A stretch of DNA of 64,000 nt from sequence record OQ708376.1; one strand, 5' to 3'. The translations under genes were made by a program, and so were the position numbers. Positions 39,481 to 58,249 of the stretch are shown here, one piece after another. The notes under the pieces are model-generated. The model had not been told where the DNA came from and did no database searches. It saw only the letters and a list, made by a program, of their open reading frames with translations. Position 1 is the stretch's first letter, and each line of letters starts with the position of its first letter.

Positions 39481-39509
39481 TTGACATCCTTTCAGTACTG
39501 GTGTACTAT
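39481..39509 (+). promoter_or_regulatory. promoter of the small-gene array, divergent from the propeller array
   Basis: TTGACA-N17-TACTAT, AGTACT in the spacer. Confidence 0.7.
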
Positions 39510-39534: not shown

Positions 39535-40972
39535 ATGACAAATACTCTTAAGTACTACCTCAATACTCTAAATGAACTAGAGTACGGGGAATTTCTCGCG
39601 GATAGTTCGTGGCTAATTGAGCTAAAAAATTATAATAGTCCAGGATGCACCCTTATGATGAACAATGCAATTGATACCCTCATTGTGAGTATTTTACACA
39701 GCAACATCTGCGGGGATAGCAATAAACAATTATCAAAAATCTTAGTACTGCTATCTATATGAACATTGAACAGTACTACATCGATGCACTACCAACAAAA
39801 GGTCTACGAGAAAGCCTACTGTATACACAAAATACTTTTATACACTACAAACGTTGTCCTAAACTCCTGAACTCGTACAGGAGTAATATCATAAGAAATG
39901 CTTTACAAGGGGCAGAAAGTATGCAATACTATTATATCCTTGCCCTTTTAATCGAGTACTAATATGAATACTGAACATAAAGAATTCTACACCAAATACC
40001 TTAGCAACGAAGAACAATTGTTTCTAAGGAGTGTATCACCTTTAAGTATAGATACACCACACGCCAGAGATTGCTTTAATAATTGTATACGTAGTACTAT
40101 AGAAGCAATCGAATGTAATAACAAAAATATTATGTACTCAGGTTTAATAGGACTAATATATTTCTATGAATAATCATAAAGATTTCTATTGTAGTAAACT
40201 ACCCAAACAAGAACAGCTATCATTCTCTTTAGCACCACCTATGAGAAAGGATAATCTGTATTATAATTACGATTTCAGGATGGTGACACGTTATGCAATA
40301 GAACATACGTTCCCTGCAACTAAGTACCGCTCTATCCTGAACCTCATCTTTAAGTTCTAAAAGGTACACCAGGGACCGAGTACTTTAACATAGTAAGGCT
40401 AATTACAATGAATCATATAAGCTACTACTACCAACAACTATCCGACAGAGACAAGTACAGTCACAACTCCCATGTGTGGTACTACAAACGCGGCAGTATA
40501 AGAGACAAACAACATTACTTCTGTATTTCTATTAAAGAAGCACTGACAACTAAGTACACGTACCGAGCAGTACTGAAACTTATTGAAATGTAAGGAAGAA
40601 AATGAACATAGAATTCTATTTAACTAAACTACAACACGCCGAAAGATTCAACTTCAATAAGTTCAATATTTTCTACAATTGCGGGAACAAAAAAGATAAA
40701 CACACCTTCCTATATGTCGTCACAAGAGATGCACAAAACGAAAAGTACACATACAGAGAAGTAATGAAACTAATCGCTATTTAAGGAATACTATGCAACA
40801 ATTCTATAGAGAACGTATAACCATAAAAGACCGTTTCATGTACGACACCTTCGTGAAGTACTACAAACTAGGAACAAAAAGTACTAAAAATATTAATCTC
40901 AATAGCTGCATTTATGCTGTACTAACACAAGATAATCCCTACAGGGAAATCCTCGCCCTGGCATCTATATAA
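39535..40972 (+). CDS. seven tandem ~60-75-aa paralogs (39535..39762, 39759..39962, 39964..40173, 40166..40360, 40408..40593, 40602..40784, 40793..40972)
   Basis: N-terminal (K/E)(F/Y)Y...L and C-terminal Y..(I/L)L.LI. Confidence 0.75.
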
Positions 40973-40982
40973 AGGAAACCAA

Positions 40983-41654
40983 ATGAAACTTAATGCACAC
41001 AGCAAACAATACCTTAAGCACTTTAAGTACCTCAATAGTATTCAGGCAGAATCAGTTACATCTGCATATACGTATCACCCGAATGTACTAAAGAAACGAA
41101 ATAAAAAGGAAAAATCCAGTACAAATGGAGTTAACGTATCAAAGAACCTTGAATTGTACATGAAGAAAAATAATATAGCTGTTCATTATATGAATATCTA
41201 TAATACTGATTTAAAAGTATTGAGTACTAATACGAGCACAAAGGTACTAAAGAACGCATCCTTCATCATCAATATGCAGTTGGATAATACCCCGTGCACT
41301 TTAATGCTATACTTCGGGAATACATACTTCTTCGGGAATTGTAACACCTCCCACGATGTCAATACAGCACAATTCCAAATGGGTGGCATATACTCTACTG
41401 ATGCAGAAAAAGTACACGAGAATATGCACTTCTGGCAAGCACAACGTACAGAAGAAACTGATACAGTACTACAATTCCTCAAAGAATTACAAGGCAAAGA
41501 ATTATCCGAGGAAGAACTATTCATGTACAGTACTGTAATCGATAATCCAGCACTCTATAAAAATGCGTACAATCTGACAAAACATGTACAGGAAATTATC
41601 AGTACTAATAAGAAAATGCATCACCTCATTACGTATATTACAAACTATGTATAA
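40983..41654 (+). CDS. hypothetical protein, ExxFQxS family, interrupting the small-gene array
   Basis: LKELQGKELSEEELFMYSTVID. Confidence 0.75.
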   Translation: MKLNAHSKQYLKHFKYLNSIQAESVTSAYTYHPNVLKKRNKKEKSSTNGVNVSKNLELYMKKNNIAVHYMNIYNTDLKVLSTNTSTKVLKNASFIINMQLDNTPCTLMLYFGNTYFFGNCNTSHDVNTAQFQMGGIYSTDAEKVHENMHFWQAQRTEETDTVLQFLKELQGKELSEEELFMYSTVIDNPALYKNAYNLTKHVQEIISTNKKMHHLITYITNYV

Positions 41655-43585
41655 AGAATTCTACATAAAAGAACTACCAAAGTTTCTACAAGGAAATCTA
41701 TTAGAAGATGAACCTCGCGGTATTGACTGTATATATGAAGCTGATTACTTCCGTACATGTACTGAACAAGTACTTAATGAAGAAGCTAATGAAAACAATT
41801 ATCAAGTACAACTGTACCACACCCTGTACCTTGCGTTCCAGTACTAAGGATAATATATGTATAAAGAATACTACATAGAGAAACTCCCAATGTATCTCCA
41901 ACACCTTGTACCAAACGTTGCATTGGGTATAGAAAAAAACTACGAAAAAGACTACTTCATTCAGTGCACTAAATCCTCGATATATATTGAAGACTATAAT
42001 CGAGTACTGTATCATATCCTTTTACTAATATATAGGTACTAATATGCACAAAGAATACTACACACAATTTCTCCCCAGCATTTTTGAACACTACGCCAGA
42101 TATAAAGTCCCTATGGATAACGATTTGGCAGTACTGGGATTCAATAACTGCATAGAACGAAGTATAGAAAATAGTAGTAGTTATGACCAGCTATATAACA
42201 CTATCCTACTTATATTCAGGTACTAACATGCATAAAGAATACTACACAAAACATTTCCCAATGTACCTCAGAACTAATCTATTAGATAAACCTCGCGGTA
42301 TCAATGCACAAAACGATAAAGTGTACTTTACTATGTGCACTAAAGCATGTATACTAGATTTTGACAGCTATCATCGAGTACTGTATCATACCCTGTACCT
42401 AGCTTTCGTATTCTAAGAGAACAATATGCATAAAGAATTCTACTTAAGCCATCTCGATCTAAACTCCCAAATGCTTATACCACAAATCCCAATAGATATC
42501 AAGGATAAGAAAAATACCGAACAATTCATTTACCATACACAGTGTGCGATCACCCCAAATTACATTCCATATGAATTGTACTACATTCTCGCCCTAATAT
42601 ATAGGTACTAATATGCATAGAGAATACTACACACAATTTGTTAAAGGGAACTACAAACATGCCGTACCCAGAACCCCTTTAAATTTTCATGACCCAAGTA
42701 CTATATTCTTGTTCCATGACGCAATACGTACAGTACTCAATACTAAAGATGAAGATGTGCAGTACGTATTCTTACTATTACTTATATACAGACACTAACT
42801 AATATGAATAAAGAACATAAAGAATTCTACTCCAAATACATAAGCCCCTCAGAACAAATGTTTCTAAGGACTACTCCACCTTTAAGTACTAATACATTTT
42901 TCGGCAGAGTATGCTACAATAATTGTATTCAAATGACTTTAAACGCAAACGAAGATGGTAACAGTACTAACCTGTACTCAGGTATCATAGGTATACTATT
43001 CCTGTATGAATAATTACAAAGACTTCTATTTGAATACACTACCTACTGTACTTTCTCTAAGTGCTCAATGTAAAATCCCGCTGGATAATGCTTACGCCAG
43101 ATATAGCTATTCCATAACTGTTAATCGATGTATAGAGAATCATTGCAGTACTAACCAGTACTATAACATAATCCTACTTATATTCAGGTACTAATATGAA
43201 TAAAGAACATAAAGAATTCTATATACGAAAACTAACATTCGTCCCCGTAAGAATATATAAAGAATGCGACCCAAGATTATACCTATGGCACTTCAATGAG
43301 TGCATAAAAGATTCTATATACCCTAAGAACTACAAAGAACAATTGTGCTCAGTACTAACACTAGTACTATCATATTAATTAATAGAGAATACTATGTATA
43401 AAAACTTCTATATAAGTAAACTAAAAGAAAATGAACAAGTATGGATTAGATCTATAATAGTACTGGCATTTAATAGATATGCATTTAACAGATGTACCGA
43501 GATTGCTATAGACCCTTATAATATTAAAGAGAATGTACAGTATAATCAGTACTACTATATCTTAATGCTTATATATAGGAAGTAA
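41647..43585 (+). CDS. ten tandem ~60-69-aa paralogs (41647..41847, 41857..42042, 42044..42226, 42228..42416, 42426..42611, 42613..42798, 42804..43013, 43006..43194, 43196..43378, 43394..43585)
   Basis: M(Y/H)KE(Y/F)Y...LP...F..C(I/T)...I...Y..LY..LLLI(Y/F)RY; recurring junction AGGTACTAATATG. Confidence 0.8.
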
Positions 43586-44611
43586 TTAAACACAAGTAGA
43601 CAGGGGAAGCTCCTAGTGAACAACCTTTATGTACAGGCGAATTGTTAAAATTCAGCCTGGACAAATGCGATCACTAGGATTCTCCCCAGGCTAAACCCCG
43701 TAATCATAGGTAGTCATAAGTAATCATATATAAACATTTATATGAGCACCGTAGAATCACAGAATGATTATATATGATTCAGTACTGATTAGTATAGACA
43801 AGAATTCTCAAGAATGCACGGGAAGGATTCAGTACTGATATGCCACTAAGTAGGCAGAGGAAGTCTGCCGTACTTTGTAGTTTCCAAGCTCCTTTTCCAT
43901 TTTTCAAATTACATCAAATGTAATCAAAAGTAATCACGCAATGATTAGTACTGAATTATTACTTTCACCTTAATTACAATTACCCTTTTACCCTTCGGGG
44001 TAAAATTCAATTACCCCTTGAGGCTCCAGCAAAAAGTTGGTTAGTACTCCATCCTAAATCTCGATCCTAAAAATTTTGGAGTACCTATGAAATAAAAGTT
44101 GGATCTTCGAAAGTTGAAATTTACGTTGGGACGTTTATGATTTGTGGGATATAATGATGTTTGTAGACGGGTAGTTCTCAAGAATATCAGTACTGAAAGA
44201 TGAAAGAAAGTTATTGACTTTATGATTCAGTACTGTATAATGTTCTACATAGGGTGATGAGTTGCTGCGAACAATTCATTTACTCTACCTCCTGTCGTGA
44301 GACAGTACAGAAAAGATAGTTCCTCCTGTGGTGGTACATCTTTTTGAACCTCATATGAAAATCGTAATAACAGTACTGATATTAACAGAATGGTGTCAGT
44401 ACTGATTTTAATCTAAAGCATTATGCCACCAGCACAAGCTGGTGGATTCCCTCTAACAGTATTCAGTACTACATGATGGTCTTCATCCTCCTAGGGTAAC
44501 ATAGTGAGGGCTATGATGGCAGTACTGAATACTCCCTTTCAAAAGATAGATCTATGGTATAGTACTGACGGATTTTGGGCGTAGTTACCCTGGATGGATT
44601 TTGGGCGTAGA

Positions 44612-44755
44612 TATGTCTAGCCCTCCAGAAGTCTGGAAGTAAAGATGGCTATCCATCTAGACGGCTAAACGGCTAGATTTCTGGATGGCTGGATGGCTAG
44701 ACGTTTGGACGGCTAAACGGCTAGATGGTTACACGTCTGGAAGTATAGACGGCTA
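44612..44755 (+). repeat. phased degenerate 8-bp tandem array, consensus GAYGGCTA, 18 units
   Basis: Near-consensus units at 44644, 44660, 44668, 44684, 44692, 44708, 44716, 44724, 44748, all in the same 8-bp register. Confidence 0.85.
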
Positions 44756-45384
44756 AATCAAAATTTTATTTTGTTTTTTCCAATAGTTCCCCTACCGCGT
44801 GGGGATAGTTTCCCCGCAGTATCTGGTGTTAGATTTTTCTGAATCTGGAATCATTATCTTATAAACTGGGGGCAATGTCAACGGCCTGGCCGGATATTTT
44901 TAAAAATTTTTTCAGTACTGAATTTTGGGCGTAACTATGCACCCGGTGGGCTTGAGTCTTTCTCGACTTGATGGAACTATTATACAGTACTGGAAAAATA
45001 AAGCAATACCCTGGAAGCAAAAAAGTTTTAATTAATTTGCTTGCTATCCTGGGCCGGACTATGGTACTATATTTCAGTACTGAGAAAGTGCGTTTACCTG
45101 CTAGGGTGCGGGAGTGTATCCTTTTTTTATATCTTGAATTTTGGACGGATCTTCCCACCCCCTGGGGTATCCGCTTTCTCGCGTCTATGTAGTAATTATA
45201 CGCTTTTTCAGGATCAAGTCAATACCTAAAAACAAAATAATTGAAAATAATTTAACGCGTTTAAACGGCCTGTAAAGCCCTGGAATGATTGGAATGGTGC
45301 AAATGTATAGCTTATGTGTATTAATGCGTTAGAATGCGTCTGAGGACGTTTTACGGGGTATAGGGATGATTTAGTGGATTGATT

Positions 45385-45471
45385 CAGTACTGAATAATAG
45401 TACTCCTATATAGAAAGATAGTTCCCCTGGATGATTGCAGTACTGAATAATAGTACTCCTATATAGAAAGA
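45385..45471 (+). repeat. 34-bp exact direct repeat, two copies
   Basis: CAGTACTGAATAATAGTACTCCTATATAGAAAGA at 45385..45418 and 45438..45471. Confidence 0.9.
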
Positions 45472-45585
45472 AAACTATTTTAAAAGTATTTGTAGAAAGT
45501 ACTTGCACCGTACTGATAAAAGCGTATAATGTTTTACATCGAGAGCGGGAACACTTCCCGCTACACATTAAGAGAGATTAAAACG

Positions 45586-45948
45586 ATGGCGACTCAAATC
45601 AATAAAATCATGCTTAACCTGGTAAACTTCCGCGATGAGATGAAAGGTCTTCCGGCTGAAACTGTAAAAATTCACATTGCAGCTTATCGGGAACTTATTG
45701 CAATGTTGCCGCTTAAGCGTGAACAATACGCCGCTACTTTGATGCTGGATTCAATGATCCATATAATGATCTCAAATGATTTGACGATGGTTTATCAGTA
45801 TATGGGCGAAAATTTCGCGGTGTGTAGTAAGCCAGTACCAGGGATGGCAACAACTGAGGAATTGCACGGCTTAAACTTAAAACAAGATGCATGGGATAAT
45901 ATGCCTCGTTTCCTGGTATGGGCTGACAGTGGCAAAATTTACAAATAA
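45586..45948 (+). CDS. early hypothetical protein
   Basis: Start re-called downstream of the promoter hairpin and RBS. Confidence 0.75.
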   Translation: MATQINKIMLNLVNFRDEMKGLPAETVKIHIAAYRELIAMLPLKREQYAATLMLDSMIHIMISNDLTMVYQYMGENFAVCSKPVPGMATTEELHGLNLKQDAWDNMPRFLVWADSGKIYK

Positions 45949-46041
45949 GTTTAATAAAGTACTTGCAAACTATGTTTAATGGCGTATAATGTTTTACATC
46001 AGGTGGGGAATAGTTCCCCACTATATAAGAGGATTAAAAAA

Positions 46042-46281
46042 ATGGCTAAATCAAAAATGTTCTTAGGTCACAAAAACAAAACTCATTGGAATGTAAGCCT
46101 TTGGATTAATAACGATGAGGGATTGTATCGGTTGGCCCAGGACTTTATTAACGATAGCACTAATCGCAATGATGCGGCCCGTCATATGATGTTATTTTTA
46201 GAACAGACTGGACAAGATAAAACACCGGACGGATTCAAATATAGCACTACTGCGATCCGTGCGGCGATGGTTGGAATGTAA
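46042..46281 (+). CDS. early hypothetical protein
   Basis: GAGGA RBS; WNVSLWINNDEGLY motif. Confidence 0.75.
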   Translation: MAKSKMFLGHKNKTHWNVSLWINNDEGLYRLAQDFINDSTNRNDAARHMMLFLEQTGQDKTPDGFKYSTTAIRAAMVGM

Positions 46282-46367
46282 TAGAATTTATTTAAAGTAC
46301 TATCATTTTTTTGCGATAGTACTTTATAATAGTGTTTTATTCATACACCAACGATAAGGGCAACAGC

Positions 46368-46634
46368 ATGAAAATTAAGTATTTTGCGACGCGTGAACAA
46401 GCTCGGATCGCCGCACGCCAGGACGGGGCAACGTTTAAAGATATGGGCGTACAATCGGAACGTGGTAAACGTTGGGCCATTGTAAAGCGTAGTACCGCCA
46501 GATCATTACAGTACTGGTTAGCGGCCTTAAAAAGTCCCGATAGTGTATCGCGTCGAGTGGTAGAAATAAAGCTCGACCGAAAGGGCAACCGCGTGACCGT
46601 GTACCGTACTAAAAAGATTGCAGTACTTGAATAA
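46368..46634 (+). CDS. basic early protein, paralog of 58345..58740
   Basis: K(Y/F)(F/Y)ATRE.AR..AR..GA.FKDMG and DRKGNRVTVY shared. Confidence 0.75.
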   Translation: MKIKYFATREQARIAARQDGATFKDMGVQSERGKRWAIVKRSTARSLQYWLAALKSPDSVSRRVVEIKLDRKGNRVTVYRTKKIAVLE

Positions 46635-46715
46635 AAAGTACTTGCAAACTATGTTTAATGGCGTATAATGTTTTACATCGAGAGCGGGAACTCTTCCCGC
46701 CTATAACCTGGAGTA

Positions 46716-46952
46716 ATGAAAATGACTAATATGTATATGACTGAAGTTAAAACCGTAAAAGATACTACCACGAATAAAACTACTTACTTACAGCGGATCT
46801 GTGGTGTATGGCAACGTATCAGCAAATCAAAGTACTTTAAATTAACATCATATGCAAACCGTTCGGATTCATTCAGTACTGAAATAAAAGGTAATAAAGT
46901 ACACCAATACGGCACTTATTATTATTATAGCCTGGACGCGATTGCAGTATAA
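46716..46952 (+). CDS. early hypothetical protein
   Basis: Own promoter, GGAG RBS. Confidence 0.7.
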   Translation: MKMTNMYMTEVKTVKDTTTNKTTYLQRICGVWQRISKSKYFKLTSYANRSDSFSTEIKGNKVHQYGTYYYYSLDAIAV

Positions 46953-47020
46953 GCAGTTTACAAATCTTTACAATTGCCGGTATTGACTTATTTTGTCAGT
47001 ACTGGCATAATGTATTCATT

Positions 47021-47125
47021 GGCAGATAAGCCGTAGCCCATAGGGTGCGGGAGTGTATCTATAGAAAAATTAGTTTAGTATAGTTACAATTGTGCACCCG
47101 GTGGGTTAGCTGTTGTCATGGGGTA
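47021..47125. ncRNA. convergent pair of promoter-driven mini-RNAs (CCC-N3-GGG-TGC family)
   Basis: + promoter near 46984 and - promoter near 47153 face each other with no ORF between; 11 family copies in total. Confidence 0.5.
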
Positions 47126-47237
47126 TATTATACCAGTACTTGATAATGCTGTCAATACTTTTTTTTTACTATTCAGTACTGAAAACTATTTTTAAAAAGT
47201 ACTTGCAAACTATGTTTAAAGGCGTATAATGTTTTAC

Positions 47238-47312
47238 ATCAGGACGGGGAACGAAATAAGTAACTTCCCGTTAAGTAGCCCAGGAGTAAGGCACACGAAA
47301 AACTCCCCTGAT
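47238..47312 (+). ncRNA. candidate ~75-nt structured RNA, copy A (B 57150..57222, C 49793..49865)
   Basis: Starts at the promoter TSS; closing stem ATCAGG/CCTGAT, two inner hairpins, TAAGTAG linker, covariation among copies. Confidence 0.55.
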
Positions 47313-47380
47313 AAAATAGTTTGACAAATGTTTTTAAAAGCGTATAATACTTACATCAACTACTGAATGAGGGTTACAAA

Positions 47381-47992
47381 ATGAAAACTATCACTACTAC
47401 TACTTATGTTATGGCTTTTTCTGAATTGAACGCAGAACAACAAACGTCAGCTATCGAACTGGTTCGGGAACGTGAAAAAAACTCAAACGACAATTATTTT
47501 TCTGAAAGTGAAATTGAATACTATAAAGAAACAGTACTACCGGAATATGGCATTAATGACGCTGAAATACAATTCAGTGGTTTTTGGTCCCAGGGTGACG
47601 GTGCATCAATCAGTACTGACCACGTTGACGCAGTGAAGTTTTTACGCAAGGTAAGAGCATTAACTAAGTATCGCTCAATCCGTCACTTGCTGAATGAAGA
47701 TGATTTGGCGATGAGTGTAAAACGTTCGCACTCCCACTACTCGCATGAGAATACTGTAAGCGGGTACATTGAATCGGCTTACACTGATTTAACCGCAAAA
47801 CAAGAAACGTTAGTTAATGAGCTTGAGGAACTACTCACTGAAACTATTCGTGAATTGTCCCGCAAGTTGTACCGTGATTTAGAGAATGCATATGAGGATC
47901 AATTCACTACTGAAAACATTACGGCACTGATTGAGGGTAACGAATATCAATTCAATGTTATTGATGGCGTAGTAGAATCAATCGAATATTAA
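47381..47992 (+). CDS. acidic early protein with FSGFWSQGDGA motif
   Basis: GAGG RBS, own promoter, 203 aa. Confidence 0.8.
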   Translation: MKTITTTTYVMAFSELNAEQQTSAIELVREREKNSNDNYFSESEIEYYKETVLPEYGINDAEIQFSGFWSQGDGASISTDHVDAVKFLRKVRALTKYRSIRHLLNEDDLAMSVKRSHSHYSHENTVSGYIESAYTDLTAKQETLVNELEELLTETIRELSRKLYRDLENAYEDQFTTENITALIEGNEYQFNVIDGVVESIEY

Positions 47993-48084
47993 TTTAAAAA
48001 GTACTTGCAAACTAAGTTTAAAAGCGTATAATACTTTATATCGAGAGCGGGAATAGTTCCCGCTACTAATGAGGAATACTACAA

Positions 48085-49675
48085 ATGAATACTTTTACCT
48101 TCGCTCAATTGAACGCCCTGGATGTATTGTCTGATGCTTTGCGGGATGCAACTGAAAGCGGTTTATTTGACAATGTTGACATTCACCCTGATGTAATTAA
48201 TAATTTTTGTGATGCTATCGCAGAAGTACTGGAAGATCTAAAAAAATAATAGAAAGTACTTGCAATTAGTTTTCAGTACTGTATAATGGTTTACATCAAA
48301 GGGAGAAATGGTTCTCCCTGGTAATGAGGAAAATACAATGGCTAATATCACTACTCTTTCCCAACTGGAAGCACTGGTTAAATCTATGCGGGAACATGCT
48401 GACAAAATCGGCGTACAAGATCCAGCCGTTTGCTTCTGCGACGAATTGAATGATGATACCCTGGTAATAGCAGAAGTCCAGGACGTTTCTAACTATTCCT
48501 CGCGTTACACTGGCGGCGTAGCAAATAAAGGTGACTTCTGTTTATACCTTACAAAATAACAACGCGGGGAGATAATAACTCCCCGTTACTTTTTCAGTAC
48601 TGAATCATTTAATAGACGGATCTCGGCACCCGGTGGGTTAGTGACTGTTTCGTCTTGATGTAGTAATTATGCCAGTACTGGATGCACTTGTCAACAATTA
48701 TTTTCCAAATACTTTTTATTAAAATACTTGCAATTAGTTTTTAAACGCGTATAATGTTTTGCATAGGGGGAGCGGTTCCCCTGGTAACTAAGGAATAATA
48801 AAATGCTTGAACAAATCAAATCAACGTCTTCGAATGTAACGGGAACGGTAGCACACTTTACTAGTGATGAATCGCGGGGCGTTCCCTATTGTGCTGTACA
48901 TGTAAACACTGAGGGTAACTACTGGTTTACGGTTTACGGATCATATTCATTTGGACGGCCTGGACATCAAAAAATTCTGGATAAAGTACAACCAACGGGT
49001 AAAAATATCACTGCCGAAATGTTTTATAAAAAATCATAAAGTACTTGCAATTAGTTTTTAGTACTGTATAATATTTTACATCGCAAGGGGAAACGGTTTC
49101 CCCTGGTAACTAAGGATAATCAAATGAAAATTGCAATCATCGCCCTGGCTTTATCTGTTTCCTCTTTCGCTGTTAATGCGTCATTAGATGTAAGTAGTGA
49201 AAAATTCATTCAGTGCACTGTTGCAATGACCGATGAAAGAACTGGCGAGATTGTATTAAAGGATTTAGAGATCCAGCCGGAAGCATTTAAAAACGGCCCG
49301 TTCCATGAAGAAGACGAAAACGGTAGCACGACAATTTATTATGATGCCAGTACTAAACGCGGTTCGGTCACTGTAATGGATACCGAGAAAGTAACTCATA
49401 CCGGCGTTATTAATTGCCGTTGATAGATACTACGGGGTAACATCATGACTAAGCGAATTGTTTTACTTAACGAAAGCAGTACTACACAACTACTTAACGC
49501 CGTGCATTATGATATTGAAACGAGCGTTAATCTTATCAGTACTGTAGTTCTGTTGGACACTGGAAAGGTAGCCAATGATAAAGCGATTGCAGGTATACTA
49601 ACGGATCTTGTGCCTGGTAGCAGTGCACCAATAACGTTAAATGGTAAAGTGTTTAATATTTTACTCACTGATTAA
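48085..49675 (+). CDS. five early genes (48085..48249, 48338..48559, 48803..49039, 49124..49423 with signal peptide, 49445..49675)
   Basis: Most have their own promoter-hairpin-RBS; terminator AGCCCACC-T-GGTGGGCT-T run at 49682. Confidence 0.7.
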
Positions 49676-49908
49676 GTACATAGCCCACCTGGTGGGCTTT
49701 TTTGTTTTTGTAGTATCGTAGTACTGAGATACTTTGAAAATAGTTTTAAAAAAGTAGTTGACATTACCACAGAAAAGCGTAGAATGTATTACATCAAGAC
49801 GGGGAGCACTAAGTAGACCGCCAGTAAGTCGAACGAAAAACTGGACACGTCGAGAAAACTTTGATACACTAATAAACGTAAACTAAACTTTAATTGAGGA
49901 TTTATAAA

Positions 49909-50391
49909 ATGGCTAATGTAAAATCATTCATCAAAGCACTGGTAGCAAATGAAACTAACGTCGCGGCTGAGATCCTGGCTGAACTGGATAACGATACCAT
50001 GAAAGCGGTACGCAACAATTTTAACATTGCGTACAGTGAAGCTAAAGAACTGCAAGCCAAAAAGGTAGCAGAACTGGAAGAACAGAAAAAAGCCCGTGAA
50101 GCAGAACTACAAGCAACAATTGAAAGTATTCAGGCGGCAGTGTCTGGATTGGATCTGGAAGTGGTTGTAGAAATGGCACATAAAGCCCTGGCGGTTAAGT
50201 ACGGTGAAGATAAGCCGGAATCTAAACCTAAAAAATGGATTCAAGAACGTGTTACTGTAGTACTTGATAACGGTGAAGAACATTTGATTCCTGTACGCGG
50301 TAACTGCATTGCGGTAGTACTGGACGCTATCAAAGAAAGCGGTATGACTCGCGAGGAATGGATCGAAGCTCATCGCAAAGTTGAAGCATAA
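49909..50391 (+). CDS. H-NS-like protein with a degenerate DNA-binding motif
   Basis: N-terminal coiled coil, K/P linker, C-terminal DNGE...RG..AVV.DAI.E.G...EEW aligning by eye to H-NS ENGE...QGR.PAVI..AM.E.G...DDF. Confidence 0.5.
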   Translation: MANVKSFIKALVANETNVAAEILAELDNDTMKAVRNNFNIAYSEAKELQAKKVAELEEQKKAREAELQATIESIQAAVSGLDLEVVVEMAHKALAVKYGEDKPESKPKKWIQERVTVVLDNGEEHLIPVRGNCIAVVLDAIKESGMTREEWIEAHRKVEA

Positions 50392-50676
50392 CAATTAAAG
50401 TACTGAATCACTAGCCCACCTTAAACAGTGGGCTTTTTTGTGTCTGTAGTATTCCAGTCCACCAGCACCGCCTAGAATCGATTCTAACGCATTAAACTGA
50501 TTATCTGATACATCGCCCTAGCTGGTGGCGTTAAGGTCGTTAGAATGCGATTGAGAGCGTTTAAAGTATTTTGCAAAAAGTAATAAAAAGTACTTGCACG
50601 ATTAAGAGATTAGCGTATAATGTTTTACATCGAGAGGGGGAAACGGTTCTCCTTCCAAATCAAAGGAATCAAAACA

Positions 50677-51203
50677 ATGGCTATTATCATTACTCGCGTA
50701 TCTGGTACTACTGGCAACGAACAAGTAGTTGCAGTCATTACTAACAAGGCAGGTGCGGAATTGCAAAATGCAATGAATACCTGGGCCGTTAATGAGTTCG
50801 GTCAGTGGGCAAGTGTAGCATACATTGAAACCTATCAAGTGCCGTCGATTAGTTTAACTGATTTGGGCGTTGAGCGTATCCTTTGCCTGGATGAATTAAA
50901 TTAAAAAAAGTACTTGCAAAGTAAATCGAATAAAGTATAATACATTACATCAAGGGGAGAAATGATTCTCCCCACTACAAGGAAACTAAAATGGCTATCA
51001 TTACTAAAATCAAAGTTAACAAGACTATCGTTAAACTGGCAGAAGTGAAAGAAGGTTATAAAGTATCTTGGTGCGGTATGTATCGGACGTTCGCAGATAT
51101 AGATGATGCGATCAATTATTACAGTGACACGGTTAAAAACTTTGTTCGTGCTGATGTGGTTATGGCAGTGGCAACATATAAAGCAGCGAAAGAAAGTAAG
51201 TAA
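50677..51203 (+). CDS. two early hypothetical genes (50677..50904, 50991..51203)
   Basis: Own promoter cassettes and RBS. Confidence 0.7.
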
Positions 51204-51294
51204 AAATATTATCACAGTACTATTGACATAGTTTGATAGTACTGGCATAATAGATTTTATCAAGACGACACATATTAATTTAAGGAATACTAAA

Positions 51295-51618
51295 ATGGCT
51301 AAAACTATCATCAACACCGTTTCCCTGGCTGCAATCCATGCAATCAATGTTGACGGTAAACGTTGGACTGATTCATATGGCAATACTTATCATTCTTGTC
51401 ATGTAAGCGTTGAACTGGATAACGGCTTGAATGATCTGGCGGTTGAATCATTTACTTATGGCTATGAGGATGCATATCAACAAACGGCGGTATCACTCTT
51501 AAAGGAATCAGTAGACGGGCTTGATACTGTTGAAACCTCCCTCTATCGTTTGTGCAATGATCTTAATATCCCGTTGCATTGTACTGTACAGGATGTAAAA
51601 CGTAAAAAAGATCTTTAA
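51295..51618 (+). CDS. early protein, paralog of 57926..58249
   Basis: RWTD..GNTYHSC.VS...FTYGY...DVKRKKD shared. Confidence 0.8.
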   Translation: MAKTIINTVSLAAIHAINVDGKRWTDSYGNTYHSCHVSVELDNGLNDLAVESFTYGYEDAYQQTAVSLLKESVDGLDTVETSLYRLCNDLNIPLHCTVQDVKRKKDL

Positions 51619-51698
51619 TTAGCTTTACTTTATGCAGATACTTTGATATAGTGTCTGCATAGGGGAAAGAAATTAAATCAACTTAAGAGGAAAGTAAA

Positions 51699-52728
51699 AT
51701 GAAAAATATCAGTACTTTAATCGATGCAGGTACACATGTTCGTCGGTCTATGGTTGCAACCAGTTCTACAAAACAAGTAGCGAGCGGTTATCTTGTATTT
51801 GTGCACGATGGAAAACTCCTGGAACGTTCAATCAATTTTGATGTTAAAAACAATTGCCGTTTTATTATCTTTCGCCGTGAACAATATAAAATTGATTTGC
51901 CAGCGAAGCCCATTAGCGGGGCGTACAACGTGCAATCATTGTTTGAGCGTCAACCTTACACCTATTAATCAAAACATCGTTAGCGGTCGATTTAGGCCGC
52001 TTATATTGGGGATTATACCATGAACGTTAATCAAGTACTGAATGAGATCGAAAGCATCATTAAACCGATGAAGCGTACTGATGCTATGTTAACACCGGAA
52101 GAATGCCGCCTTTATGAGCGTTACAGCGTCGAACAAGTCCAGGCAATGGCTATGGCTACCCCAGCCGTTTCACCGCCTGAGAATGCGTTACAGGACGTTA
52201 CAGGGGATTATATCATTAATCCAGTACTAGGGAAGATGACTGCAATCACCGAAGATCAAAAAGACTACTTAAGCCAGTACTTAAAAGGTTAATTAATATG
52301 CTTACTGTACAGGATAAGATCGACATCTTAAAGGTTAATATGTATGTGATTGATGCCGTACCTGGTAAAGTATTTGCATACGATGATAGTACTGTAAGCG
52401 ATTTCTACTATAGCCAGGACGTGGGGGATCTTTCTGTACAGTCGGTTATTGAAAACGTAGTTAATGCAGCGTATGAGCATTTACTTTCAAATAGTACTTG
52501 CAATTAGTTTTTAAACGCGTATAATGTTTTACATGAAGGGGAGAAATGATTCTCCCCAATAACAGGAGAAACAAAATGAAACAATACAACGCTCGGTTTG
52601 ATGTTACTATCGGTAACGGCAAAGGTCAATTCTCTTTCAGTACTCGCCGCAGTTATACAGAAAACTTCCTGCGTAATTGTGCACTGACCGCCGCTCAAAT
52701 TAAACACTATTTTCAGGCTAAAAAATGA
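51699..52728 (+). CDS. four early hypothetical genes (51699..51968, 52020..52292, 52298..52507, 52576..52728)
   Basis: RBS and co-orientation. Confidence 0.65.
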
Positions 52729-53168
52729 AATCATTAGCTTATTACAGTTCGGCCCTGGTCGGTGCATTGATCGCGGCATTGTTAGTAACCTATCTATTCT
52801 TTATGGTGATTTAAATGAATCCAACAGGTTTAAACTATAAAAGTTGTTCTGCATTTACGAAAGCAAATAAAGCGAATGCACGTAAAGCGAAAGTACAGGA
52901 ATACATCAAGCAAGGCATGACGCGAAAAGCGGCGATTATAAAAGCTAAAAATAAATGAAAAAAGTGGTTGACTTCGGTCAGCCATTTTGTTATTATATAT
53001 TCATTGAGAGATAGCTCACTAGCCCACAGGGTGCAGGAGTGTATCTATTGTATGAGTATTGAGTACTGAAAACTATTTTTAAAAAGTACTTGCAAACTAT
53101 CTCAATAAGCGTATAATGTTTTACATCGAAAGGGGAAACGGTTTCCCCTGGTAATAAGGAAACAAATC

Positions 53169-53819
53169 ATGACTATCTCAATTGCTCAATCTAACTTTGA
53201 AAATGAAATCATCGCCCAGGCACTGCGTTTAAATGATGGTCGGGCCGAAATTAATTACGGTTTCAATTCAGGCGGTTGCGAAAAATATCAGTACTTTGTA
53301 ACGGCTGATGGCGGTGTCCTGGGTATCAATACAGTTATTGTAAACATCCAAAAAATTAATTTCAATGATCCAGACGATAGCCAGTTTTACATCACTGGCG
53401 TAGACGTGAACTATGAGGATGACTCACTAACTGATGATCACACTGGCGAGCGGTTAGAAAGTGCATACGGTGAAGATGATTATCAGTCCGGTCCAGAAGA
53501 TTTCGAATAATATAAAAAAATAGTTTGACAATAGATTATAGTACTGTATAATAGTTTACATCAAGGGGAGAAAAACTTCTCCCCACTAACAGAGAGAGAA
53601 AACAAAATGGCTAATATCCGGTCGAAATTAAAAAATGCAAAACAAGTTTTATTTTCAGATCATGAATACTTTAATAAAGATATTACAGGAGTTACAAGTA
53701 TCAAGGAAGTAAAAGAAAAAACCGGCGTTTTGTGTGATGTGCGATTAGTTGGAACATTTGGGAATAACGTGCTATATCGCTGCGGTGATTACAATTTTAC
53801 ACTGACTATCATTAACTAA
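53169..53819 (+). CDS. two early genes (53169..53510 acidic; 53607..53819)
   Basis: Own promoter cassettes and RBS. Confidence 0.7.
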
Positions 53820-54958
53820 AAATATTATCACAGTACTATTGACATAGTTTGATAGTACTGACATAATAACTTTTATCAACTACACTATTAAGGAATTAAA
53901 AATGGCTATCATCGCAAAAACTGAAATCGTTGGTCTGGATTCTATCATCATGACGTTTGAAGATCAAAAAGGTATGTATGTAGTTTCATATGGTGATTAT
54001 GTTCGGGAGTATGAAACGGTAGACGAAGCCTTTGAAAGTTACATTCGCCAGGTGAATAAAGCATACGACGATTACCGCTAAAATATATTACCAGTACTAT
54101 TAAAGATATTGACAACGTTTGATAGTACTGTATAATAAGTTTTATCAACAGTAGTTAACTTAACCTAAGAGAGAAATAAAATGATCGCACTGGATTCATT
54201 CATCGACGCAGTACTGGCAAAAACTGGCGAGGATCTGACCGCAGAACAATACGCAATGATCGAGCAATGCCAGCAAGACGGTAAATCGGTGAAAGATACT
54301 GTTAAGATTATCCGCAAGATGTAAGATTATAGCCCACTGGTTAACGCTGGTGGGCTTTAATTCATTACCCTATACAATGCCAGTACTAAACCGTTTATCT
54401 CGTTAGAATGCGTTACAGGACGTTTAACAATGATTAGCATGAAATCAGTACAAAAACAAATAGAAACATTATCAAAAATTAAACGTAAACAGTACTCCTT
54501 AGAATATACAATCAATGGTAACTATCATCTAATGAAAGAGAATAATTTTATAGTCATTGATGAATCATTGCAAATCATTAGTATAGTACTGAAAGCATTA
54601 ATCAATGACAGAAAAAAATTAAAATAAACTATTGACAATATCATCAAGTACTGGCATAATACTTACATCAAGACGAGAACGTCACTAACCCATAGGGTGC
54701 ACAAATGTAACTGTATAATATTGATCAAAAAATGATCTGATCAATACTTGATCAATTTGCGTAAAGTAGTATAATTCTATGCAGTTGGTTAGACGAAAGG
54801 TTATGATTAGTAGTGCAAGTGTATAAAAATTTTCATGGTGTATCGTTTCGCACATATGGGGATGAATATGTGGTATCATGTGGATTGGAAAAAGTAAGAA
54901 CAAGTAATATTATTGTCGCATTACAGTACTATAGTATTTTTATAATGAGGTTAAAATA

Positions 54959-55216
54959 ATGGCTGTAGGATTCGCGAAAGATGGGGCCGAACAAGACGAG
55001 ATTAACGCAGTGATTCAGGCCGCCGTTAACCACGCTAGAAAGCAAATTAACGCACAAATAGAATCACTGATACATTGCCTCGACTGCGGCGATATAATCC
55101 CTGAGAATCGACGCCAGGCCGTTAAGGGATGTAAGTACTGCATAACTTGCCAGGAGGATCATGATAGTACTTTTAAACGTCCCCCGCGTAATTGTTGGCA
55201 TAGATCTATGAGATAA
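54959..55216 (+). CDS. DksA/TraR C4 zinc-finger protein (YbiI-like)
   Basis: MAVGFAKDGA N-terminus; CxxC-G..IPE.RR.A..G-CxxC..CQ. Confidence 0.85.
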   Translation: MAVGFAKDGAEQDEINAVIQAAVNHARKQINAQIESLIHCLDCGDIIPENRRQAVKGCKYCITCQEDHDSTFKRPPRNCWHRSMR

Positions 55217-55279
55217 AAAGTATTGACAGTACTGAAAGATAGTGTATAATGTTTTATATCTTAACTGAGGATAGAAATC

Positions 55280-55636
55280 ATGGGAATACAACATATCACG
55301 CGTACTACTGACAATGGCGAGATCACTGGTTATCAAGTACAGGGCAAAGTAGCACAATTGCAGTACTGGTTTGTTAAACGTGGAATCATTGCACCGGATC
55401 TTGATTATGACCGTGTAGCGTTTATTGATTCTCTTTATGTTGATCCTGATAGTCGGGGCAATGGTGAAGGTAACGAATTAATGAATGCCTTTATTGATGC
55501 CGCCGATGATTCAGATTGTATCATTTTAGAATGCGATACGGGAGAAGATAACGCCTTTAATCTTAAAGAATGGTACGAAGGTTTCGGATTCGAGGTACTG
55601 ATCGATAGTGAATATCCTATCATGATTTTATCATAG
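55280..55636 (+). CDS. GNAT-family acetyltransferase
   Basis: IDSLYVDPDSRGNGEG (motif A) and WYEGFGF (motif B). Confidence 0.8.
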   Translation: MGIQHITRTTDNGEITGYQVQGKVAQLQYWFVKRGIIAPDLDYDRVAFIDSLYVDPDSRGNGEGNELMNAFIDAADDSDCIILECDTGEDNAFNLKEWYEGFGFEVLIDSEYPIMILS

Positions 55637-55708
55637 TACTTGCATTTAGTTTTCAGTAGTGTTATAGTACTTACATCAAGGGGAAACATCTTCCCCTACT
55701 AAGAGGAA

Positions 55709-56550
55709 ATGAAAATGGAAAACTTATCAAGTATTTTAGTACAAGATGATTTCGGTAATCCTGGAAGTGCTATCATTGTTCGGGGTAATAAAGCAACATT
55801 TGTTATTGCTGGTGGACCTGTACAGCGTAGCATTAAAAACAATGCCGTTACTATTAATAATGTACGCTATCGCTTAGATAAAGAATTGATTCATAAACTG
55901 TAATATTAATTTAATAGAGGATAACAATAAATGTACATTCATACTACTATCACAAAGGAAGTCCGTTGCCAGTTCGAAAGTATTCCGGGCGTATGTTTCA
56001 TCACTGGTACGTTTTCCCCTGGTGATCGTGATAATCCAGTACTGTTACAATTACGCCATCCATCATGGGATAAAGCATTTGATCTACCGTTGAATGAATT
56101 CGCAACTACTGCTGAAAAGTACATTAAAAATATTCGCGAGAATGATCGACTATTCATTAATGCTTTTAGTGATTCCGCGTTAAGCGAGATCCACGGTGTA
56201 TTGGTTGCAATCATGGAATCAATGGAGAAAACTAAATTCAAACAAGGTGAATAAAAACTATTGACAAGATAATCTAGTACTGTATAATAAGTTACATGAA
56301 GGGGAGAAATGATTCTCCCCACTGAGAGGAAAGAAAAATGCAAGGTCAACTAATCGTTCGTAAATGGTCTGATACTAACGCTAAACCGTGGGATGTACAA
56401 TACATCGGACCGGATGGGGTATCACGTTATCAGCCTGGCGTAACGCATAGTACTGAGCAATATGCCGCCGCTCACCGCGAACGCCTGTTAGAATCCATGA
56501 AACAGGGATACGGTGAAAAATTCATTCAAGATCATTGGCTGAAAGATTAA
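55709..56550 (+). CDS. three early hypothetical genes (55709..55903, 55931..56254, 56338..56550)
   Basis: GAGGA RBS; promoter cassettes. Confidence 0.7.
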
Positions 56551-57291
56551 TATAAGGAGTACAGCTTATGCAAATGAATCCGATGATTATTGTTTTAGCT
56601 GTACTTATGATCATTCATGCAATAGTAGAAGTATTAACGCAATCAGGAGTAATAAAATGATTCAAGTAGAATTATCAGTACTGAAAGATCTGTTTTATCG
56701 GTTAGGTACTACTGGCGAGTATCCTAAAAGTGATACCGCAAAACTTTTTGTATCACTCGACTTATGGCAACGCGAACAATTAGTAATGTCCTGGCGTAAA
56801 GGTAAAGCAGATAGCGAGGTGAAAGCATGAAAGAATTCTTATTCGAAGTAGTGTTTCAAGGTGTCGGTAGTAACCAACTGATTCGCTCAAGTGGTTACAA
56901 TGTTAACCAGGCATGGAATAACATTAAACAAATGTACCCGAACGCTATCACCTATCGCAACCCGAAACAAGTTTAAAAATAATTGAAAAAGGGATTGACT
57001 CCGGTCAGTCCCTTTGCTATTATATACGCATAGAAACAAATCAGCCCACAGGGTGCATAAATGTATCTATTGTTTGCTGGTGGCTAGTACTGAAAACTAT
57101 TTTTAAAAAAGTACTTGCATTGTACTTAGAATCAAGTATAATGTTTTACATCAGGACGGGGAACGAAACAAGTAACCCCGTTAAGTAGTCCAGGAGTAAG
57201 ACATAAGAAAACCTCCCCTGATAAAATAGTTTGACAATAGAAAGTAAACGAGTATAATACTTACATCAACCACTGATAAGGAAACATTAAA

Positions 57292-57567
57292 ATGCGGATT
57301 CTACTGACAGCTAACGAAATCGAACAAGTACTGACTACTAACCTGGAAGACTGGAAACGTGAAGCAGATATCCAGGCGGTTCAACGGCTTAACGATGAGT
57401 TAACGCCGGATGACTTAAGCAAGATTGTAGATCCTCAATTCTACGAAGATATCCACGACACCGCGTTAAGCGTCGAGGATGTACTAGATAAGCACTACAT
57501 TGATATTGATTTGCAGGTTTACGGTCGTAAAAACTTTATCACTATTCACGACATTTACAATAATTAA
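57292..57567 (+). CDS. small highly acidic early protein
   Basis: About 20 D/E versus 8 K/R in 91 aa. Confidence 0.75.
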   Translation: MRILLTANEIEQVLTTNLEDWKREADIQAVQRLNDELTPDDLSKIVDPQFYEDIHDTALSVEDVLDKHYIDIDLQVYGRKNFITIHDIYNN

Positions 57568-57653
57568 GTATTGACAAAGTATCTTAGTACTGTATAATAG
57601 TTTACATCGAGAGGGGGAATGGTTCCCCTCCTAACAAAGAGAGAGAAATAAAA

Positions 57654-57836
57654 ATGGCTAAATGCACTATCTGTAAGAAAGAAATCGTATTAGTTCCAAG
57701 TGCCCGTGAACGTGCCGCTCGGTTCGGTGGCAAAGCGTCAGACTATACAAAAATGTTTACTACCCATGCAGCTTGCCAGGTAGCAAAACGTTCACAAGAA
57801 AGCGTAGAATTAATGCGTAAACTTTCCAAAAAATAA
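57654..57836 (+). CDS. small Zn-binding early protein
   Basis: CxxC...HxxC. Confidence 0.7.
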   Translation: MAKCTICKKEIVLVPSARERAARFGGKASDYTKMFTTHAACQVAKRSQESVELMRKLSKK

Positions 57837-57925
57837 GTATTGACAAAGTATCTTAGTACTGTATAATAGTTTACATCAAGCGAGGGGAATGGTTCCCCTC
57901 CTAACTAAAAGAGAGAGAAATAAAA

Positions 57926-58249
57926 ATGGCTATGATCCTTACCCAGAAAGTAGAACTGAAAATTGTAACCTCCTTTGACATTAAAGTTAATCGCTGGACT
58001 GATCGGAACGGTAACACTTACCACTCTTGCTACGTGTCCGCGTTAATTGGCGACCGCTGGGAAGACTTGGGACATGAAACCTTTACTTACGGTTACGGTA
58101 CACAAGGAGAATACACGGGCTTGGAGATCATTAAAGAAACCGTTATAGGTTTCAACCCGAAAGAAAAAGTTATTCACCGCATCGAAAAAGAGATTAACAA
58201 AGAAATAACAGTTCGCTACTACGATGTAAAACGTAAGAAAGACATGTAA
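57926..58249 (+). CDS. early protein, paralog of 51295..51618
   Basis: Shared motifs listed under 51295. Confidence 0.8.
   Translation: MAMILTQKVELKIVTSFDIKVNRWTDRNGNTYHSCYVSALIGDRWEDLGHETFTYGYGTQGEYTGLEIIKETVIGFNPKEKVIHRIEKEINKEITVRYYDVKRKKDM

Follow-up and report, generated by a model that had tools for sequence, protein, structure and literature searches.

The right end of the genome of the Escherichia jumbo phage vB_EcoM_CRJP21 (Asteriusvirus; genome 366 kb) carries an array of 17 small genes, 15 to 17 of which are diverged paralogs of a soluble helical scaffold of about 60 residues with a conserved core and a highly diversified surface. Our best explanation, which taken as a whole we put forward as possible rather than probable, is that the array is a lineage-specific tandem multigene family housed in one polycistronic, translationally coupled operon. 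The analysis covered a window of 64,000 nucleotides from record OQ708376.1.

An earlier note on this DNA, made from the letters and a list of reading frames, had described 17 small genes between 39535 and 43585. The description was borne out: the interval holds 17 small ORFs of 59-75 aa on the + strand (two starts, 41647 and 42228, were refined) together with one unrelated 223-aa ORF, A223, which belongs to a different family and divides the array into seven and ten genes. The resulting 18-gene operon is the final operon in the unique part of the genome. Intergenic gaps within the array run from -8 to +15 nt with a single exception of 47 nt, and the annotation of the CRJP21 record misses 13 of the 17 small genes. 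The features of the operon are as follows.

39481..39509, + strand, sigma70-type promoter-like site; consensus scan 10/12 matches, 17-nt spacer
39535..39762, + strand, m01, 75 aa, acidic; opens the operon, membership in the family not demonstrated
39759..39962, + strand, m02, 67 aa; probable divergent member, start overlaps the m01 stop by 4 nt
39964..40173, + strand, m03, 69 aa, core; core profile E 1.6e-26
40166..40360, + strand, m04, 64 aa, core; 8-nt overlap with m03
40408..40593, + strand, m05, 61 aa, basic sub-family trio (S type); trio profile E 4e-35
40602..40784, + strand, m06, 60 aa, S type; placed by trio profile and hhalign
40793..40972, + strand, m07, 59 aa, S type; in 11/11 phages compared
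40983..41654, + strand, A223, 223 aa; phrog_29152, E 9e-156
41647..41847, + strand, m08, 66 aa, core; start overlaps the A223 stop by 8 nt, annotated as gp_583 in CRJP21
41857..42042, + strand, m09, 61 aa, core; protein chosen for the AF2 model
42044..42226, + strand, m10, 60 aa, core; 1 nt after m09
42228..42416, + strand, m11, 62 aa, core; start refined from a listed 77-aa ORF
42426..42611, + strand, m12, 61 aa, core; BLASTP and leave-out HMM
42613..42798, + strand, m13, 61 aa, core; BLASTP and leave-out HMM
42804..43013, + strand, m14, 69 aa, core; paralog of m03, missing from 121Q and SP27
43006..43194, + strand, m15, 62 aa, core; paralog of m04 and m10, missing from 121Q and SP27
43196..43378, + strand, m16, 60 aa, core; BLASTP and leave-out HMM
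43394..43585, + strand, m17, 63 aa, core; terminal gene in 10/11 arrays, JNE01 being without a member of the m17 cluster

The twelve core members (m03, m04 and m08-m17) match one another significantly in HMM tests that leave members out. The S-type trio m05-m07 aligns with the core over its full length (hhalign, 91% probability, E 1e-6), a link that emerges only with sub-family profiles built from 11 phages. At the level of profile comparison, the homology of these 15 of the 17 array proteins can be regarded as proven. The alignment of m02 with the core (hhalign, 58% probability, E 1e-4, 54 columns) makes it a probable member. For m01, which is found in 10 of the 11 phages at 79-100% identity and has no BLAST match to the first gene of JNE01, the leave-out HMM gave an E value of 0.54 and hhalign a probability of 3% (E 0.013); its three motifs run colinear with those of the array family. 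The earlier claim that all 17 form one family thus holds for the core and the trio and probably for m02, and for m01 it was not demonstrated. The family profile matched only the 17 array ORFs among the 960 six-frame ORFs of the window, which excludes chance for the array and leaves no additional member elsewhere in the window.

Twelve of the 17 proteins match phrog_11711 at E <= 0.01 (best 6e-28), with m01, m02 and m05-m07 giving no match to this profile. Judged by sequence, the core array family is phrog_11711, which had already been catalogued from Asteriusvirus genomes in the databases; the entry has no name, function or description and does not record the array organisation. For all 17 members, Pfam returned only sub-threshold chance matches, NCBIfam and PADLOC nothing significant, and the PDB-sequence profile search only matches at E >= 2. 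A word-index search gave 36 matches, an exhaustive search of 1.84 billion proteins yielded only 32 clusters at 50% identity, and every named match to the array family came from Asteriusvirus-type coliphages or Salmonella phages. The family had not been recognised in the earlier note either, and the HMM and Foldseek searches led to no well-characterised family: the unnamed PHROG is the only relative, with none in Pfam, NCBIfam, PADLOC, the PDB or by Foldseek. No account of the ~60-aa family was found in the Sharanji, UE-S1, fEgEco12, JP4, phAPEC6 and CBB papers or in jumbo-phage overviews. The JP4 supplements have no entries matching array proteins, and no Asteriusvirus transcriptome was found in the literature searched.

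The AF2 model of m09 (pLDDT 91.7, pTM 0.74) shows two short helices at the N terminus followed by an extended linker and, at the C terminus, a helical hairpin, in agreement with the small helical scaffold that had been proposed. A Foldseek search of the PDB with this model gave no relative (best E 9), although 61 residues are too few for a strong negative, and a search of BFVD returned only members of the array family itself. Paralogs are 15-45% identical and still conserve the scaffold positions. The proteins are rich in Tyr, and their net charge ranges from -7.4 to +4.8 with pI values of 4.4 to 9.6. The picture of fixed ends around a hypervariable middle proved roughly right. In the core set of 12, the most frequent residue has an average share of 0.55-0.58 over residues 1-12 and 51-61 and of 0.27-0.38 between them, but the variable middle also contains conserved scaffold positions at 22, 34, 37 and 42. 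The surface is strongly diversified, but not, as had been suggested, in one loop only: among orthologs, variation peaks at profile positions 21-27 and at 45-49 and also spreads across the helix surfaces. The recurring 3'-end codons of many members may also serve the following gene as its ribosome-binding site, so part of the "fixed end" may reflect a constraint at the DNA level.

The single promoter that had been placed at 39481 coincides with the sigma70-type site in the list above. In 9 phages, EJP2 and JNE01 among them, the -35 hexamer of this site is invariant and the -10 hexamer is conserved. The site lies in a divergent intergenic region of 102 nt that the operon has in common with the first RCC1-like gene, and a strong Shine-Dalgarno-like site is located between it and m01. 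Across the array region, sigma70 consensus matches are not enriched (21 found vs 26 expected), and no terminator-like site was found on the + strand inside the array. Most junctions are marked by a short motif consisting of a stop, one base and ATG, or by an 8-nt overlap. The longer junction motif quoted in the earlier note was confirmed with 4 occurrences at <=2 mismatches, where 0 were expected.

Comparison with other phages showed that the array is a genuine "accordion", as it had been called. Across 11 phages the copy number is 14-23, EJP2, a member of the same genus, has no copy, and one of the indels corresponds exactly to the product of a crossover. The members from the 11 phages fall into 36 clusters at 50% identity; those of the window occupy thirteen clusters at this threshold, most of them kept in 10-11 of the 11 phages. 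The S-type sub-family has 2 to 6 copies in other phages, and the slot of m08 is occupied there by different members. Genes m03 and m04 form a two-gene cassette that is duplicated as m14-m15: m03 is linked to 42798-43043 by a 246-nt direct repeat of 74% identity, and m03 and m14 match in BLASTP at 1e-27. The substrate of the m14-m15 indel can be seen in two identical stretches.

42798..42829, + strand, 32-nt stretch of junction and 5'-coding sequence, identical to 43190-43221; substrate of the m14-m15 indel
43190..43221, + strand, second copy of the 32-nt junction stretch, identical to 42798-42829

In the alignment, 121Q and SP27 carry an exact chimera of the two 32-nt junctions in place of m14-m15. 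The BLAST blocks stop and restart at the 32-nt stretches, and further block ends coincide with the conserved 5' ends of genes. Unequal homologous recombination, with its crossovers in conserved stretches of junction and 5'-coding sequence, adds members to the array and removes them, in a birth-and-death mode. As the paralogs are old (15-45% identity) and the orthologs stable (90-100% identical among close phages), nothing points to adaptive amplification in the very recent past.

The array members are genuine genes, on which selection is purifying but relaxed. All 205 members from the 11 phages are intact ORFs of 57-77 aa. The earlier note had named a dN/dS near 1 as evidence against translated genes; the values found are 0.21-0.46, significantly below 1 in every genome pair (P for neutrality 7e-4 to 2e-7). 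A gene in the terminal repeat has a lower dN/dS (0.17-0.22), and A223 is similar to the array (0.41-0.46). The operon in its entirety diverges much more rapidly than the DNA on either side and forms a divergence island: in the comparison with JNE01 the flanks are 86-90% identical, whereas the array is alignable only in fragments. Such an island could also arise where a permissive genome end is under relaxed constraint.

The last point leads to a reading that we consider rather improbable, namely that the array is a tolerated by-product of recombination, in which repeated junctions near the terminal repeat keep making duplicates of marginal or redundant function and the divergence reflects relaxed constraint instead of an arms race. 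Tandem duplication has been proposed as a route of genome growth in jumbo phages (PMC5646251; PMC7247149). The free variation in copy number, the comparatively high dN/dS of the array next to the terminal-repeat gene and the fact that EJP2 manages without the array would all suit such a by-product. However, a marginal function is difficult to reconcile with a complete set of intact ORFs, with dN/dS significantly below 1 in each pair, and with scaffold positions conserved across such divergent paralogs. The conservation of the promoter and of translational coupling, and the retention of most window-member clusters in nearly all of the phages, also argue against it.

A223 is the fixed "anchor" of every array, and its family occurs in 37 phage records. 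It has no Pfam match and no PDB sequence match, and its AF2 model is poor (pLDDT 44.5), the alignment of relatives being shallow (62-87% identity). A 220-aa ORF at 27768-28430 was considered as a paralog of A223 and is unsupported (BLASTP E 2.1). In the 32 kb of EJP2 that were examined the small family is absent, but the promoter is still present and so is an A223-like gene: a distant A223 homolog stands alone at the same place, and distant A223 homologs are found on both sides of the RCC1-like array.

The neighbouring RCC1-like genes raise another explanation, to which we assign a slim chance: the array proteins could be chaperones, adaptors or regulators matched to the divergent RCC1-like beta-propeller paralogs. 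The two arrays are always adjacent with a divergent promoter region in common, and both vary in copy number between phages. In phAPEC6, the RCC1-like gp549 and gp551 are virion-associated according to a passage of the published virion table (PMC7247149). The same passage (entries gp347 to gp549, with the RCC1-like gp549 and gp551 present) contains no array protein, for example the m07 ortholog gp545c, although small proteins can escape detection (PMC7247149). EJP2, which has at least 14 RCC1-like genes and none of the small genes in the stretch examined, speaks against a matched partnership, and the absence from the passage may do so as well. The different strands and promoters of the two arrays argue against co-translation.

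We favor a reading in which the array acts on the host. Given the consensus match of its promoter, the operon would be transcribed early by the host RNA polymerase. Each product would act as a binder inside the cell and recognise, through its variable surface, a host component of its own, which would make the array a repertoire of host-takeover or counter-defence modulators, and the content of the repertoire might track the hosts met by the phage lineage. An anti-defence or host-takeover role is plausible from the sequence data, as it fits the sigma70-type promoter, the divergence island, the dispensability of the array in EJP2 and the purifying but relaxed selection. No similarity to known anti-defence or host-takeover proteins was detected for the array family by Pfam, PDB profile or Foldseek PDB searches. 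A bolder version, which we regard as unlikely, is that one new helical fold of ~60 residues has been diversified into dozens of specificities, each neutralising a different host defence or takeover target, with recombination at the junction repeats shuffling the repertoire to suit the hosts that a lineage encounters. If true, such a repertoire of single-scaffold binders would be the phage counterpart of a variable-receptor gene family.

Small helical proteins behind a putative early promoter might also be transcription or nucleic-acid-binding factors that redirect host or phage transcription, comparable to the small early proteins of T4 with RNA polymerase or DNA as their binding partner. Bacillus phage G has an expansion of ~35 zinc-ribbon copies, interpreted in the literature as transcription factors or as structural proteins that bind DNA (PMC7824862). 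We think this quite improbable for the array family. No HTH, zinc-ribbon or other DNA-binding domain was found, and the PDB fold search with the model returned none of the small phage proteins that bind polymerase. In addition, the wide range of pI, with several strongly acidic members, makes a shared nucleic-acid-binding role unlikely.

The earlier note had offered antitoxin-like decoys as an alternative, in which the members would mimic antitoxins and so neutralise the toxins of host toxin-antitoxin defence systems. Phage-encoded toxin inhibitors have precedents in T4 TifA and T4 Dmd, and ~60 aa is the size of known inhibitors of this kind. The proposal did not fare well and appears very improbable to us: Pfam, NCBIfam and PADLOC revealed no antitoxin domain, the PDB gave no fold match, and the neighbours of the array genes are their own paralogs and A223, which has no known domain, with no adjacent toxin gene as a partner. 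It would be a special case of the host-directed reading with no evidence of its own.

Several known systems resemble the array in part. Poxviruses (K3L amplification) and asfarviruses (MGF families) carry tandem paralogs near the genome ends that change copy number by recombination and are linked to host interaction; the likeness to the CRJP21 array is one of genome dynamics only, as the viruses and the proteins are unrelated. The hyperplastic regions of T4-like phages are reportedly clusters of small lineage-specific ORFs with sigma70-type promoters, variable and dispensable, between conserved flanks. The CRJP21 array shares the small lineage-specific ORFs, the sigma70-type promoter, the variability and the conserved flanking DNA, but those regions are mosaics of unrelated ORFs that usually have their own promoters, whereas the array is one family in a single coupled operon. 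In T4, amplification of the small early gene tifA, whose product inhibits a host defence toxin, gives counter-defence (Srikant, Guegler and Laub, 10.1101/2022.04.14.488369). As in CRJP21, a small phage gene is multiplied in tandem by recombination and its copy number evolves. However, the tifA copies are recent, near-identical and lab-selected, while those of CRJP21 are old, diverged to 15-45% identity and stably inherited, and no sequence or fold similarity was found between TifA and the array proteins. Papers on jumbo-phage gene arrays (PMC7247149, PMC5646251, PMC7824862) deal with this phenomenon, in part for phages of this very group, and none of the three describes the ~60-aa family. PMC5646251 leaves unspecified which array is meant in 121Q; the small-gene array of this phage has 16 members in our comparison.

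The array provides a clean natural example of an accordion in a bacteriophage, with the substrate, the product chimera and an ancestral-like empty state (EJP2) all present in deposited genomes. If the members are host-directed binders, they would constitute an unusually large counter-defence or takeover repertoire built from a single family, in a phage group considered for therapy, and would supply a new, compact scaffold whose natural variation links sequence to specificity.

Two further features lie downstream of the operon.

43644..43710, + strand, non-coding element immediately downstream of the operon; conserved almost without change in 6 phages, JNE01 among them
43849..64000, no strand assigned, direct terminal repeat of the genome; left edge extrapolated

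The element at 43644-43710 is unique in the window and falls inside an RNA stem structure predicted at -36.7 kcal/mol (z -4.15). A permissive Rfam search of 39300-45700 returned a single chance-level match and none for the element. A large paralog family in the region downstream of the array was also considered and is unsupported by BLAST at 1e-6. The array ends ~260 nt from the terminal repeat of roughly 20 kb. Window positions 44000-64000 equal record positions 152-20152 at 100% and also the record's own end, and the record of a relative annotates "Direct Terminal Repeats" at the same place. The repeat contains 12 perfect 12/12 sigma70 consensus sites, 11 of them on the + strand, and 107 sigma70-type sites overall vs 70 expected.

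The + strand between 39535 and 43585 carries 17 small ORFs (m01–m17, numbered 5' to 3') and one 223-aa ORF, A223, which lies between m07 and m08. Refining the starts of two small ORFs to 41647 and 42228 gave lengths of 59–75 aa. The family profile matched exactly these 17 among the 960 six-frame ORFs of the window, each with an E value of 1e-13 or better (next match 0.09), in agreement with the number of small genes counted in the earlier note. Intergenic gaps range from -8 to +15 nt, the sole exception being 47 nt between m04 and m05; most junctions consist either of a stop, a single base and ATG in succession or of an 8-nt overlap. An AGG-containing Shine–Dalgarno-like element lies 8–12 nt upstream of most starts, supplied at several junctions by the final sense codons of the gene before it, and the strongest ribosome-binding site in the array is that of m01. 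The long junction motif of the earlier note occurs four times at no more than two mismatches, against 0 expected. No terminator-like site was found on the + strand within the array, and sigma70 promoter-like sites show no overall enrichment in the region; one 11-of-12 sigma70-like site (42361-42389) falls within the coding part of m11 and is either a possible internal promoter or a chance match. A single coupled operon and a single diversified scaffold are well supported.

Features flanking the array
28411-39432, - strand: nine RCC1-like genes (matches to PF00415, PF25390 and phrog_4219)
39481-39509, + strand: sigma70-type promoter-like site, -35 invariant and -10 conserved in nine phages
43644-43710, directly 3' of the array: conserved non-coding stretch of ~65 nt, lying in a predicted stem structure (z -4.15)

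Over 39400-43700, identity is 100% to vB_EcoM_CRJP21 (OQ708376.1, Asteriusvirus, 366 kb), of which the window is the final 64 kb, and 99.6% to PBECO4; the source is a bacteriophage of E. coli, and all 36 matching phage records are Escherichia or Salmonella jumbo phages. Of the 17 small genes, the CRJP21 GenBank annotation (OQ708376.1 341836-345886) lists no more than four, along with the 223-aa gene, so that the record omits 13 genes that are intact and conserved. Most small genes are annotated as hypothetical proteins in other phage records.

The claim of 17 tandem paralogs stood for most of the array. Leave-out profile tests within the window gave a strongly related core of 12 (m03, m04, m08–m17), a separate tight trio (m05–m07), a marginal m02 (E 0.022) and no significant match of m01 to the rest (E 0.54). 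We then built sub-family profiles on 215 unique sequences, gathered in 11 phages and by protein searches. With hhalign, the core matched the trio over 62 columns at 91% probability (E 1e-6) and m02 at 58% (E 1e-4). Its alignment with m01 was colinear and full length, at 3% (E 0.013). Two divergent JNE01 proteins score with the core and trio profiles alike. At the level of sequence, we read paralogy as proven for the 15 members of core and trio, probable for m02 and unproven for m01.

The family had not been recognised at first reading, and HMM and Foldseek checks likewise gave no named family, only phrog_11711 (function unknown), into which 12 members fall. Searched exhaustively with an HMM, 1.84 billion representative proteins yielded only 32 clusters, of ~60 aa apart from a 41-aa fragment and a marginal 843-aa match (E 5e-4). 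Named relatives come solely from Asteriusvirus-type coliphages or Salmonella phages, among them the divergent JNE01 and A4, whose members carry consecutive accessions. Profile searches of Pfam, NCBIfam, PADLOC and PDB with the small members gave no significant match.

The picture of an accordion is borne out by comparison. Profile searches in 11 phages found 14 (UE-S1, JNE01) to 23 (ELP-22) members; m01–m02 at the start and m17 at the end are kept in 10 of the 11, A223 is in place in all, and the interior is variable. JNE01 keeps an m02-like gene, and m01 and m17 are not detectable there. At 50% identity the window's 17 members form 13 clusters and the whole sample 36 (85 at 90%). Orthologs among close phages are 90–100% identical and paralogs 15–45%, which marks the family as an old one, shaped by birth and death rather than by recent amplification. 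Genes m14–m15 are missing from 121Q and SP27; where m13 meets m16 in these two phages, the sequence is exactly chimeric between the m13/m14 and m15/m16 junctions of the window. The changeover falls within 32 nt that are identical at 42798-42829 and 43190-43221, as expected of a product of unequal homologous recombination. Elsewhere, too, colinearity blocks break and resume at conserved gene 5' ends, for example near m08, and the pairs m03–m04 and m14–m15 are duplicates of one two-gene cassette (74% identity over 246 nt). Accordion dynamics via the junction repeats are well supported by these sequence comparisons.

Every member found in the 11 phages is an intact ORF. A dN/dS near 1, which the earlier note had named as a sign of untranslated ORFs, was not found: on same-length reciprocal orthologs of the small members, six independent genome pairs gave Nei–Gojobori values of 0.21–0.46 (binomial test against neutrality, P 7e-4 to 2e-7; pooled pN/pS 0.36). 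These values resemble those of A223 (0.41–0.46) and exceed those of a terminal-repeat gene (0.17–0.22). In comparison with JNE01, identity is 90% over the upstream flank and 86% over the 2.1 kb downstream, whereas the array aligns only as scattered fragments at 67–75%; judged by identity, the small-gene operon is a divergence island. That the array is a tolerated by-product of recombination under relaxed constraint, as its copy-number changes and divergence might suggest, appears rather unlikely beside the retained frames and the rejection of neutrality.

A223 belongs to phrog_29152 (function unknown), has no match in Pfam or PDB, and occurs in 37 phage records, inside the array every time; its model (pLDDT 44.5) was too poor for use. 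In EJP2 the promoter region is retained and one A223-like gene stands at the equivalent place, adjoining at least 14 RCC1-like genes, with no small-family member in the 32 kb examined. Distant A223 homologs (25–28% identity) flank the EJP2 RCC1-like array on both sides:
L012 5007-5675: A223 homolog
L013 12688-13380: A223 homolog
A 220-aa ORF at the equivalent left-hand position of the window (27768-28430) showed no significant similarity to A223.

A 102-nt region upstream of the small genes is common to the first gene of the divergent RCC1-like array, and the promoter that had been placed at 39481 corresponds to the candidate site within it. The RCC1-like genes are tandem beta-propeller paralogs of ~300–430 aa, with 11 copies in phAPEC6, where a passage of PMC7247149 reports two as virion-associated. 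Several short RCC1-like fragments were detected between the nine copies by BLAST, so some copies are possibly truncated or split. The small proteins might be partners of these neighbours; with EJP2 carrying the RCC1-like array and no small-family member in the 32 kb examined, we consider this improbable.

Fixed ends around a hypervariable middle had been proposed. Among the 12 core paralogs, the mean share of the commonest residue is 0.58 at residues 1–12 and 0.55 at 51–61, against 0.27–0.38 between them, but the middle also holds conserved positions (22, 34, 37, 42) with helical spacing. AlphaFold2 on m09 (26-sequence alignment; pLDDT 91.7, pTM 0.74) predicts the small helical scaffold anticipated: a pair of short helices at the N terminus, then an extended linker (16–27) and a helical hairpin (28–43, 47–59). 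Variation in one loop was not upheld, as substitutions between orthologs at 75–99% identity cluster at two stretches, profile positions 21–27 and 45–49, and are fewest in the C-terminal helix. Net charge runs from -7.4 to +4.8 over the 17 members, GRAVY is negative in all but m01, and tyrosine makes up 10.9% against 5.6% in reference ORFs. Foldseek with the m09 model found no relative in PDB (best E 9) and only the family's own members in BFVD. Small helical proteins could be transcription or nucleic-acid-binding regulators; given the spread of charge and the empty profile searches, we hold this to be a minor prospect.

We infer instead that the small proteins would form a repertoire of intracellular host-directed binders. 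This reading fits the sigma70-type promoter adjoining a region that looks early, the widely differing surfaces of the small soluble products, dispensability and fast divergence with reading frames kept, and the absence of the family from a passage of the virion protein table in PMC7247149. The nearest phage precedent is tifA of T4: amplified in tandem, this small gene overcomes a toxin–antitoxin defence (10.1101/2022.04.14.488369). General remarks on tandem duplication in 121Q-like phages have been published (PMC5646251; a passage of PMC7247149), and our literature search found no paper on the small-gene family, its fold or array dynamics. The array is an uncharacterised instance of the hypervariable accessory gene arrays of large phages.

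Downstream, 44000-64000 matches record positions 152-20152 at 100%, indicating a direct terminal repeat of ~20 kb; its left edge extrapolates to ~43849, ~260 nt past m17, and the record of a relative has direct terminal repeats annotated at the equivalent place. The repeat holds 107 promoter-like sites against 70 expected, with 12 perfect sigma70 consensus promoters (TTGACA-16/17-TATAAT), 11 on the + strand, ahead of many small + strand genes. One 28-nt hairpin, which contains a -35-like hexamer, occurs in identical copies at 56988, 60258 and 62516 and in variant form at 52961; in EJP2, intergenic units of ~90 nt recur many times. The conserved stretch 43644-43710 is nearly invariant even in JNE01, where array proteins are only 27–58% identical; it has no second copy in the window and no Rfam match. 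Lying ~140 nt ahead of the extrapolated edge, it may have a part in end formation or packaging. Over its initial ~1.7 kb (43849-45528; 86% identical in JNE01, 79% in EJP2), the terminal repeat has no convincing ORF but does have a periodic repeat of 8/16/24/48 bp at 44656-44755; this part is a candidate for a terminus, a packaging region or an origin.

GCGC is absent from the window (~56–63 expected), and GTAC (613; 208 expected from base composition, 400 from a Markov model) and AGTACT (280; ~22 from base composition, 224 from a maximal-order Markov model) are in excess, a pattern running through all 2-kb bins. Just upstream of the RCC1-like array, eight consecutive, strongly hydrophobic + strand ORFs of ~105–140 aa (24946-27726) look like multi-pass membrane proteins. 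They appear to be a further tandem family; BLAST at 1e-6 pairs the first two only, and EJP2 has an equivalent run.
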